Positions 54,897-55,208 of a stretch of DNA of 64,000 nucleotides are shown piece after piece. The DNA lies in IMG/VR virus record IMGVR_UViG_3300024252_000004, positions 248,001 to 312,000 of that record; one strand, 5' to 3'. The notes beneath the pieces were generated by a model that had not been told where the DNA came from, did no database searches, and was given only the letters and a program-made list of their open reading frames with translations. The position numbers and the translations under genes are program-made. Within the stretch, counting starts at the first letter, position 1; every line of letters starts with the position of its first letter.

Positions 54897-55208
54897 AGAC
54901 AAGGCAATTAATTGAAAGGAAGTTGGCTTAAAGGCAGCCATCTTTTAAAGAGTGAGGTCCAGACTCCTGGGAATTATGGCAACAGAACGAATGCTATCAA
55001 GAGTAAGTTCTGCGAAAGAGAATGAGAAGCTGTCAGGCTCAAAGTTCTCGGGAGGTATAGCAACTGTGAGATTGTAAGAACCGTGGAGACTCACGGCGTT
55101 TCGGGCGAGCCTCTGTAGTAGCTGTAGAGAGTTGAGAAACTTGCAGTGAATGATGACGCTTAGTAGCCTCTTTGGCGTTATAGCACACTTTCAATTTTGC
55201 CTTAGTCT
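54897..55208 (+). ncRNA. Large structured RNA containing a 23S rRNA H43/H44 (uL11-binding) mimic
   Basis: AGGAAGTTGGCTTAAAGGCAGCCATCTTTTAAAGAGTG ... CGTTATAGCACACT inside a long closing helix. Confidence 0.85.

Follow-up and report, generated by a model that had tools for sequence, protein, structure and literature searches.

A free-standing phage RNA that mimics the GTPase-associated centre of 23S rRNA is found in phage tRNA arrays

Introduction

Mimicry of rRNA is the usual design of ribosomal-protein mRNA leaders. The leader of the L10 mRNA imitates the GTPase-associated centre (GAC) of 23S rRNA, a 58-nt domain comprising helices 43 and 44 that binds thiostrepton and uL11, the latter tightly even when isolated from the rest of the rRNA. 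Leaders of the L10 type (i.e. the rplJ leader, RF00557, and its relatives) are cis-acting elements that precede the regulated gene in cellular mRNAs, and they are only loosely rRNA-like. A second point of reference is provided by the tRNA arrays of phages, with which a phage supplies its own translation RNAs and replaces or outwits host defences directed against tRNAs. Further structured non-coding RNAs, GOLLD and ROOL, often adjoin phage tRNAs (PMC12286853). In a published catalogue of viral structured RNAs, none of the 10,006 candidates is reported to overlap rRNA predictions.

Here, we describe an RNA gene of a huge phage that carries the GAC as an independent element. The nearest functional analogue is the L10 leader, as both are RNAs outside the ribosome that imitate a protein-binding site of rRNA; however, the phage RNA is free-standing, almost identical to rRNA and devoid of a conserved downstream gene. 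The gene resembles those of phage tRNA arrays in its place, strand and likely processing, but an rRNA domain cannot be swapped into the ribosome as a tRNA can and would, therefore, act only as a free ligand or decoy. As compared to GOLLD and ROOL, the phage RNA is smaller, is defined by its mimicry of rRNA and has no match in Rfam. No description of a phage mimic of the GAC or of the sarcin-ricin loop was found in searches of the freely accessible literature. With no matching Rfam family and no such description, the RNA is, on this evidence, a new kind of phage RNA.

Results

The window encodes a split copy of the GAC

The window (i.e. the whole stretch of 64,000 nucleotides that was analysed) is part of a 395-kb viral genome in IMG/VR and contains the RNA gene at positions 54897-55208 of the plus strand. 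The 23S rRNA gene rrlH of E. coli was used as the reference for comparison. Window positions 54914-54953 correspond base for base to E. coli 23S positions 1051-1090 and positions 55175-55192 to 1091-1108, and all 58 nt of the GAC domain (i.e. helices 43 and 44, the uL11 site) are represented in the window copy. The initial annotation had aligned 54917-54954 with 1054-1091 and 55176-55189 with 1092-1105, and both alignments were reproduced. The former is ungapped with identity at 32 of 38 positions, as compared to a best value of 21-23 of 38 in shuffles of the window (n = 20), whilst the latter has identity at 12 of 14 positions. Direct comparison with E. coli also verified the two compensatory exchanges (U1058-A1080 to A-U and A1090-U1101 to U-A), the retention of A1067 and the replacement of A1095 by U that had been reported for the window copy. 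Further compensated pairs were observed at 1051-1053/1106-1108, where G-U, C-G and C-G are replaced by G-C, A-U and A-U, respectively.

The RNA is closed by an outer helix, the strands of which pair in the minimum-free-energy fold (54897-54918 with 55188-55208; approximately 16-19 bp, including a UU bulge), and H42 is thus replaced by an unrelated helix, as had been claimed. The inner end of the 5' strand (54914-54918) is equivalent to 23S positions 1051-1055, and the 3' strand, which is supported by both the fold and covariation within the family, starts from the equivalent of 1104. The copy of helix 43 (23S positions 1057-1081, including the A1067 loop) occupies 54920-54944 and matches E. 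coli without gaps. Positions 54945-54953 follow with the junction (1082-1086) and then the 5' side of helix 44 (G1087, A1088, G1089 and U1090), a segment supported by covariation and conservation within the family. The distal hairpin and 3' strand of helix 44 (23S positions 1091-1103, with U for A1095) were placed at 55175-55187 by alignment with E. coli. An insert between these two segments had been noticed previously. Its location within helix 44 was upheld, whilst the exact site had to be revised and is set by comparison with relatives after U1090 and before G1091. The insert consists of a 217-nt arm (54954-55170) and a UUUG linker (55171-55174) that leads from the arm to helix 44. Both the closure of the arm by GAGG (54954-54957) and CCUC (55167-55170) and the individual hairpins named in the earlier description are present. 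The whole RNA has a minimum free energy of -100.5 kcal/mol, equivalent to a z-score of -3.0 relative to shuffles.

Searches with Rfam 15 detected only tRNAs in the whole window at gathering thresholds and, for 54700-55400 at E-values of up to 10, only tRNAs and noise. The models for LSU rRNA, introns, the L10 leader, GOLLD and ROOL were all without a match. In the reverse direction, a covariance model constructed from phage copies only identified the genuine site in the 23S rRNA of E. coli (49.4 bits, E-value 1e-12), matched Paenibacillus rRNA at 60.9 bits and found one copy in the window. The element agrees with the 23S domain in sequence, secondary structure and tertiary contacts but is neither contiguous nor embedded in an rRNA, indicating that it is a mimic and not an rRNA fragment.

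Copies with the same split layout are widespread among phages

A BLAST search of GenBank phages produced matches within unannotated gaps of five unrelated cultured phages (i.e. Aeromonas 4_4572, Pseudomonas Astolliot, Acinetobacter ME3, Xanthomonas XaC1 and Ralstonia RSP15). All five gaps have the same design, in which an insert of variable length and sequence follows the 5' half and UUUG precedes the 3' half. Uncultivated viral contigs were scanned with two patterns, one anchored in the 5' half and the other in the 3' half, and each scan detected at least about 120 loci. A scan of prokaryotes, with each species represented by one genome, resulted in 44 matches, 28 of which had the 5' half upstream; the remaining 16 are probably due to chance, as about 35 chance matches were estimated for the pattern. 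The removal of duplicates left 172 distinct copies. Further members were found by BLAST in Lak megaphages A1, A2, B1-B9 and C1, in Cronobacter GAP32, Pectobacterium CBB, Serratia BF, seven Erwinia phages and Yersinia fHe-Yen9-03/04, and in Xanthomonas XbC2 and XacN1 and Pseudomonas pf16, UNO-G1W1 and Milchi. The family has a minimum of 172 distinct members that share the split arrangement, and its sources are contigs of uncultivated viruses, phages in culture and some bacterial assemblies. G1089, the U1090-A1101 pair and the arm are common to all phage copies, whatever the host, indicating one origin followed by spread among phages and not repeated capture from hosts.

Copies were also observed in the isolate genomes of Clostridiaceae bacterium strain 9, Flintibacter muris DSM 110149 and Bacterium D16-76 (L225, L254 and L258) and in metagenome-assembled genomes of many phyla, including one archaeal bin. 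These copies are presumably located in prophages or mis-binned phage contigs. Conversely, genuine 23S rRNA is present in the record of Paenibacillus phage Pd_22F (L005, MZ092003, positions 82476-85513), which was also matched by the BLAST search of GenBank phages, and in many other GenBank 'phage' records of 2-7 kb, probably as a result of host contamination or mis-labelling of contigs. The stable RNAs species 1 and 2 of phage T4 (rnaC and rnaD), which are also encoded in a tRNA cluster, were considered as candidates and are not members of the family.

The three-dimensional fold of the rRNA domain is under selection

Pairing was assessed with a pair-count test on an alignment of 26 sequences for which the structure was written out by hand. 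Standard pairs occupied 90.4% of cells as compared to 38-55% when the partners were slid. The covariation score was 0.58 versus 0.11-0.17, and none of 500 shuffles reached this value. In the outer helix, the sequence of which is not conserved, all 11 tested pairs covary among relatives, and all four tested pairs of the helix that closes the arm change on both sides. Within the domain, the pair 1058:1080 occurs in all four Watson-Crick forms across the family.

Covariation extends to the tertiary contacts that are specific to the GAC. The base triple 1072/(1092-1099), which together with its covariation in rRNA has reportedly been described by Draper and colleagues, was found as C/C-G in 132, U/U-A in 32 and U/U-G in seven of the 172 copies, with one exception; the window copy has the C/C-G form. 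The lone pair 1082:1086 was scored in the set of loci anchored in the 3' half, as this set is unbiased for positions of the 5' half. Among the matches listed for this set, the lone pair was UA in 29, CG in 23 and AU in 12, nine copies carried C-G in place of A-U at 1057:1081, and U1060, G1071, A1077, A1084, A1085 and G1087-U1090 were about invariant. In helix 43, the invariant or near-invariant positions of the family are A1057, G1059, U1060, G1062-C1064, U1066, G1071 and A1073. A covarying lone pair and base triple make sense only within the three-dimensional structure of the rRNA domain, indicating that this structure is under selection. Existence of the family and covariation in both the helices and these contacts bear out the proposal of the initial annotation that the window encodes a free-standing phage RNA mimicking the GAC.

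The phage RNA is thus nearly identical to the 23S GAC at conserved positions, with the same helices, lone pair and base triple and with U1060, G1071 and A1088 all kept. It differs from the rRNA domain in its location outside rRNA and within phage tRNA arrays, in the exchange of H42 for an unrelated helix, in the obligatory arm after U1090 and in the fixation of G1089 and the U1090-A1101 pair. A further difference is the lower conservation of A1067 and A1095, which are A in 133 and 163 of the 172 copies, respectively. The constraint on these contacts, which matter for factors and thiopeptides, is thus weaker than that on the fold.

A hypervariable arm interrupts helix 44

An arm is present in all 172 copies, always after U1090, and is hypervariable, with lengths of 27-369 nt (median 162). 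It opens with a helix of at least three pairs in 159 copies and is followed by UUUG in 154 or UUUA in 11. The shortest arms (i.e. 27-49 nt) are plain hairpins. In a BLAST comparison among arms, most were mutually unrelated and only a few conserved classes were apparent. The window arm is a singleton, having no relative among the 172 arms by BLAST. A junction-specific scan for its relatives recovered only the same phage, as an identical copy in a second sample, and a synteny search with the neighbouring gene for a 410-aa protein identified 36 related loci, of which a single one carries a GAC RNA, whilst no arm related to that of the window was found among them. As the window arm is without relatives, its internal structure is predicted from folding energy alone.

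Arms of class A (L002, L003, L010, L015, L022, L033, L087, L127 and others) share a 3' motif, GGCACCCCG-(GNRA)-CGGUAAGGCUGAA, which is common to 12 otherwise differing arms and has no match in E. coli 23S rRNA. Arms of class B (L004, L006, L007, L008, L023, L268 and others) start with UGCGAG and end with CCCUUAGAGCA before UUUG; on inspection by eye, this arrangement is suggestive of a kink-turn-like junction in which tandem G-A pairs adjoin the closing helix.

Some arms carry a copy of the sarcin-ricin loop

Comparison of the arms with E. coli 23S rRNA by BLAST detected only the sarcin-ricin loop, with matching segments at 2651-2669; the remaining arm sequences, including the window arm, were at the level of noise. 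The universal sequence AGUACGAGAGGA or a variant differing by one to two bases is present in the arm of 15 of the 172 copies (about 9%), one of which is doubtful. Fourteen of these arms (i.e. those of L008, L013, L018, L024, L026, L030, L034, L035, L056, L059, L090, L109, L125 and L147) are the longest at 310-357 nt, whilst the doubtful case is a short arm in which no stem forms. About a dozen lineages, including the Lak megaphages, carry such a loop copy, which is presented in a hairpin with the layout of E. coli H95 and with stems that covary between lineages. In Lak-B3 (L269, positions 1730-1765), the GAC copy and the loop have both diverged, and a U occupies the position of the bulged G. 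The window arm lacks AGUACGAGAGGA at up to two mismatches. The loop copies in relatives lend indirect support to the imitation of a factor-binding or toxin-target site.

The RNA gene is placed and oriented like a tRNA gene

The window RNA is located amongst 36 tRNA genes that form an array on the plus strand, with a tRNA-like element on one flank and two tRNA-Phe genes on the other. In the family, tRNAs on the same strand were found at 128 of the 172 loci and tRNAs on the opposite strand at only two. A tRNA lies within 100 nt of the RNA at 76 of the 172 loci, and many adjoin the outer helix directly. The immediate upstream neighbour in the window, outside the RNA, is a tRNA-like element on the plus strand (54780-54896) that was recognised by reading and folding. 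It has a perfect T-arm, an acceptor-like 3' end, an 8-bp stem, a 9-nt loop and a long extra region, whilst no tRNA was called for this segment by ARAGORN or Rfam. The element may represent a tRNA of unusual or degenerate form, or else a signal for processing. It ends with a CCA at 54895, two bases before the RNA, which suggests that the 5' end of the RNA is set by tRNA-type processing. A scan for promoters and terminators produced nothing above chance.

No protein family was detected near the RNA at more than 11 of 169 loci, the most frequent being TerD, and no ribosomal-protein gene was recurrent within 3 kb at these loci. The window itself contains a translation and NAD-salvage island. Genes for translation include IF3 (56522-57004), bL12 (36418-36786; Pfam PF00542, E-value 1e-21), two class II aminoacyl-tRNA synthetases of the Asp/Lys/Asn type (7713-9137 and 24232-25713) and a HisRS-like fragment, a peptide deformylase and an RNA ligase (519-1106, 23008-23556 and 10964-11590, in that order). 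The NAD-related genes encode an NAD kinase, a Nudix protein and a NAMPT/NAPRTase (3423-4223, 17971-19047 and 19592-21094, in that order). Gene sets of this kind for NAD salvage are reported to counter host defences that deplete NAD. The bL12 gene to which the initial annotation had drawn attention is present in the window, but its relation to the RNA is weak as the two are 18 kb apart and ribosomal-protein genes are not recurrent neighbours of the family.

Discussion

A proposed decoy of the factor-binding site

We infer that the RNA is expressed, binds uL11 and functions as a free, trans-acting decoy of the factor-binding site of the ribosome, a reading to which we assign, tentatively, a little less than an even chance. 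The stable RNA would be co-transcribed with the tRNA array of the phage and trimmed by the same enzymes as the tRNAs. Its core would adopt the three-dimensional structure of 23S helices 43 and 44 (i.e. the stalk base), with its own helix as closure and the arm leaving helix 44. As the RNA retains the fold, together with the nucleotides that are maintained for it in rRNA, it would bind host uL11 and, once bound, would offer a free copy of the factor-binding site. Binding is likely by analogy with the isolated 58-nt domain, with possible interference by the arm. The copy could then divert host proteins that dock on or attack this site, such as rRNA-directed toxins of immune systems or competitors and stress factors of the GTPase type, and host ribosomes would go on translating phage messages.

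A decoy role is consistent with the absence of a dedicated protein partner, the tRNA-like placement and orientation of the gene and the translation and NAD-salvage island around the window RNA. The sarcin-ricin loop is the second rRNA element that touches translational GTPases and is a classic toxin target, and its copies point to likeness to the factor-binding site as the selected property; the free variation of the rest of the arm also fits a decoy. On the other hand, A1067 is variable, the window copy has U1095, the arm interrupts helix 44 and the RNA would be in competition with the tens of thousands of ribosomes that a cell contains. Moreover, the sarcin-ricin loop is found in the arms of only a minority of copies and is absent from that of the window. 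A precedent for an attack on this site exists in an antibacterial toxin that ADP-ribosylates helix 44 of the GAC at 1095-1098 and acts on actively translating ribosomes only and not on purified 23S rRNA (PMC8661411). Since this toxin needs translating ribosomes, its value as a precedent is confined to the target and does not extend to the mechanism, and a naked decoy would not protect against it. Extended to the whole family, the proposal is that phages of many bacterial phyla, ranging from 86-kb phages to Lak megaphages, encode a free replica of the factor site, in which the GAC is always included and the sarcin-ricin loop is added in some lineages. In complex with host uL11, this replica would act as an anti-defence decoy and would represent a new class of viral counter-defence RNA; this wider statement is offered as a possibility, with slightly more reserve.

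Alternative explanations

An alternative that we regard as unlikely is that uL11 in its free or exchangeable form, and perhaps also uL10-bL12, is titrated by the RNA. Loss of uL11 from ribosomes would prevent activation of RelA and damp the stringent response, or the autoregulation of stalk-protein genes would be disturbed. The conserved part of the phage RNA is exactly the uL11-binding domain. Nucleotides that determine the fold are invariant whilst the factor-contacting A1067 and A1095 are variable, and this relaxation fits a role resting on the fold and uL11 more than on contacts with factors, in line with titration of uL11. Additionally, the arm can be a bare hairpin, implying that the core alone suffices. 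Removal of uL11 would, however, also slow the translation that the phage needs, and the addition to some arms of a sarcin-ricin loop, where uL11 does not bind, is left unexplained.

It is improbable that the RNA serves as a positive scaffold, on which uL11, uL10 and bL12 (the phage's own being encoded in the window) would assemble into a free stalk-base particle that captures or pre-activates translational GTPases for phage translation. Such a particle would make sense of the bL12 and IF3 genes in the window and of the combination, in some relatives, of both rRNA elements that touch translational GTPases. No ribosomal-protein gene is, however, recurrent within 3 kb of the RNA at the 169 loci, the site of uL10 is incomplete as H42 and the kink-turn are replaced by an unrelated helix, and a free activator of GTPases would waste GTP.

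Typical as mimicry of rRNA is for cis-acting leaders, repression of adjoining phage genes by a ribosomal protein bound to the RNA is very improbable. The RNA has its own closing helix, tRNAs often abut it on both sides, there is no downstream gene family in common among the 169 loci and the Rfam model of the L10 leader is without a match.

The initial annotation had also raised self-splicing of the insert, by which a captured rRNA fragment with an intron or an excised intervening sequence would mature into the contiguous 58-nt domain. Joining of U1090 to G1091 would indeed create a perfect helix 44, and the boundaries (U|G...G|G) are compatible with such an event, but this explanation is scarcely credible. 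No intron model of Rfam matches 54700-55400 at E-values of up to 10, and the same site is occupied in relatives by hairpins of 27-49 nt. Most arms are mutually unrelated, the arms have no catalytic core in common, and the closing helix and UUUG linker are kept as a structural junction. Finally, no contiguous phage copy was present among the more than 170 collected, the sole contiguous copy being real rRNA. Assembly contamination, or decay of a functionless piece of host rRNA, has a negligible probability because, despite the occurrence of real rRNA pieces in some phage records (e.g. L005), the flanks of the element are phage tRNAs and genes, an identical copy exists in a second sample and covariation across the family is incompatible with decay.

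Implications

If the decoy reading is correct, phages carry a working copy of an rRNA domain for use outside the ribosome, extending their repertoire beyond tRNAs, ribosomal proteins and factors, and the RNA would be the first natural 'ribosome in pieces'. A widespread and readily recognised class of non-coding RNA would be added, and conserved unannotated gaps in many cultured jumbo phages would be explained. Such a decoy would point to a host or competitor activity directed against the stalk base and the sarcin-ricin loop and would help to elucidate how this site is recognised by translation factors or toxins. The family would also constitute a natural minimal system for the folding of an rRNA domain, in which the covarying triple and the obligatory extra helix amount to a mutational series. 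Laboratory phage-host pairs that carry the RNA include those of GAP32, CBB, Serratia BF, pf16, ME3 and RSP15.

Other features of the window phage

Two further features of the window concern the tRNAs and termination of translation. A suppressor tRNA with the anticodon CTA (54460-54537; tRNA-Pyl according to ARAGORN) and a short release-factor-like gene (40274-40912; 213 aa with RF-1 and PCRF domains) together hint at stop-codon reassignment in this phage. Ile, Met, Asn and Lys tRNAs normally have short variable arms. Five tRNAs of these types in the window have lengths of 87-93 nt (35325-35415, 41294-41386, 47135-47221, 48464-48554 and 22353-22445) and may carry introns or insertions.
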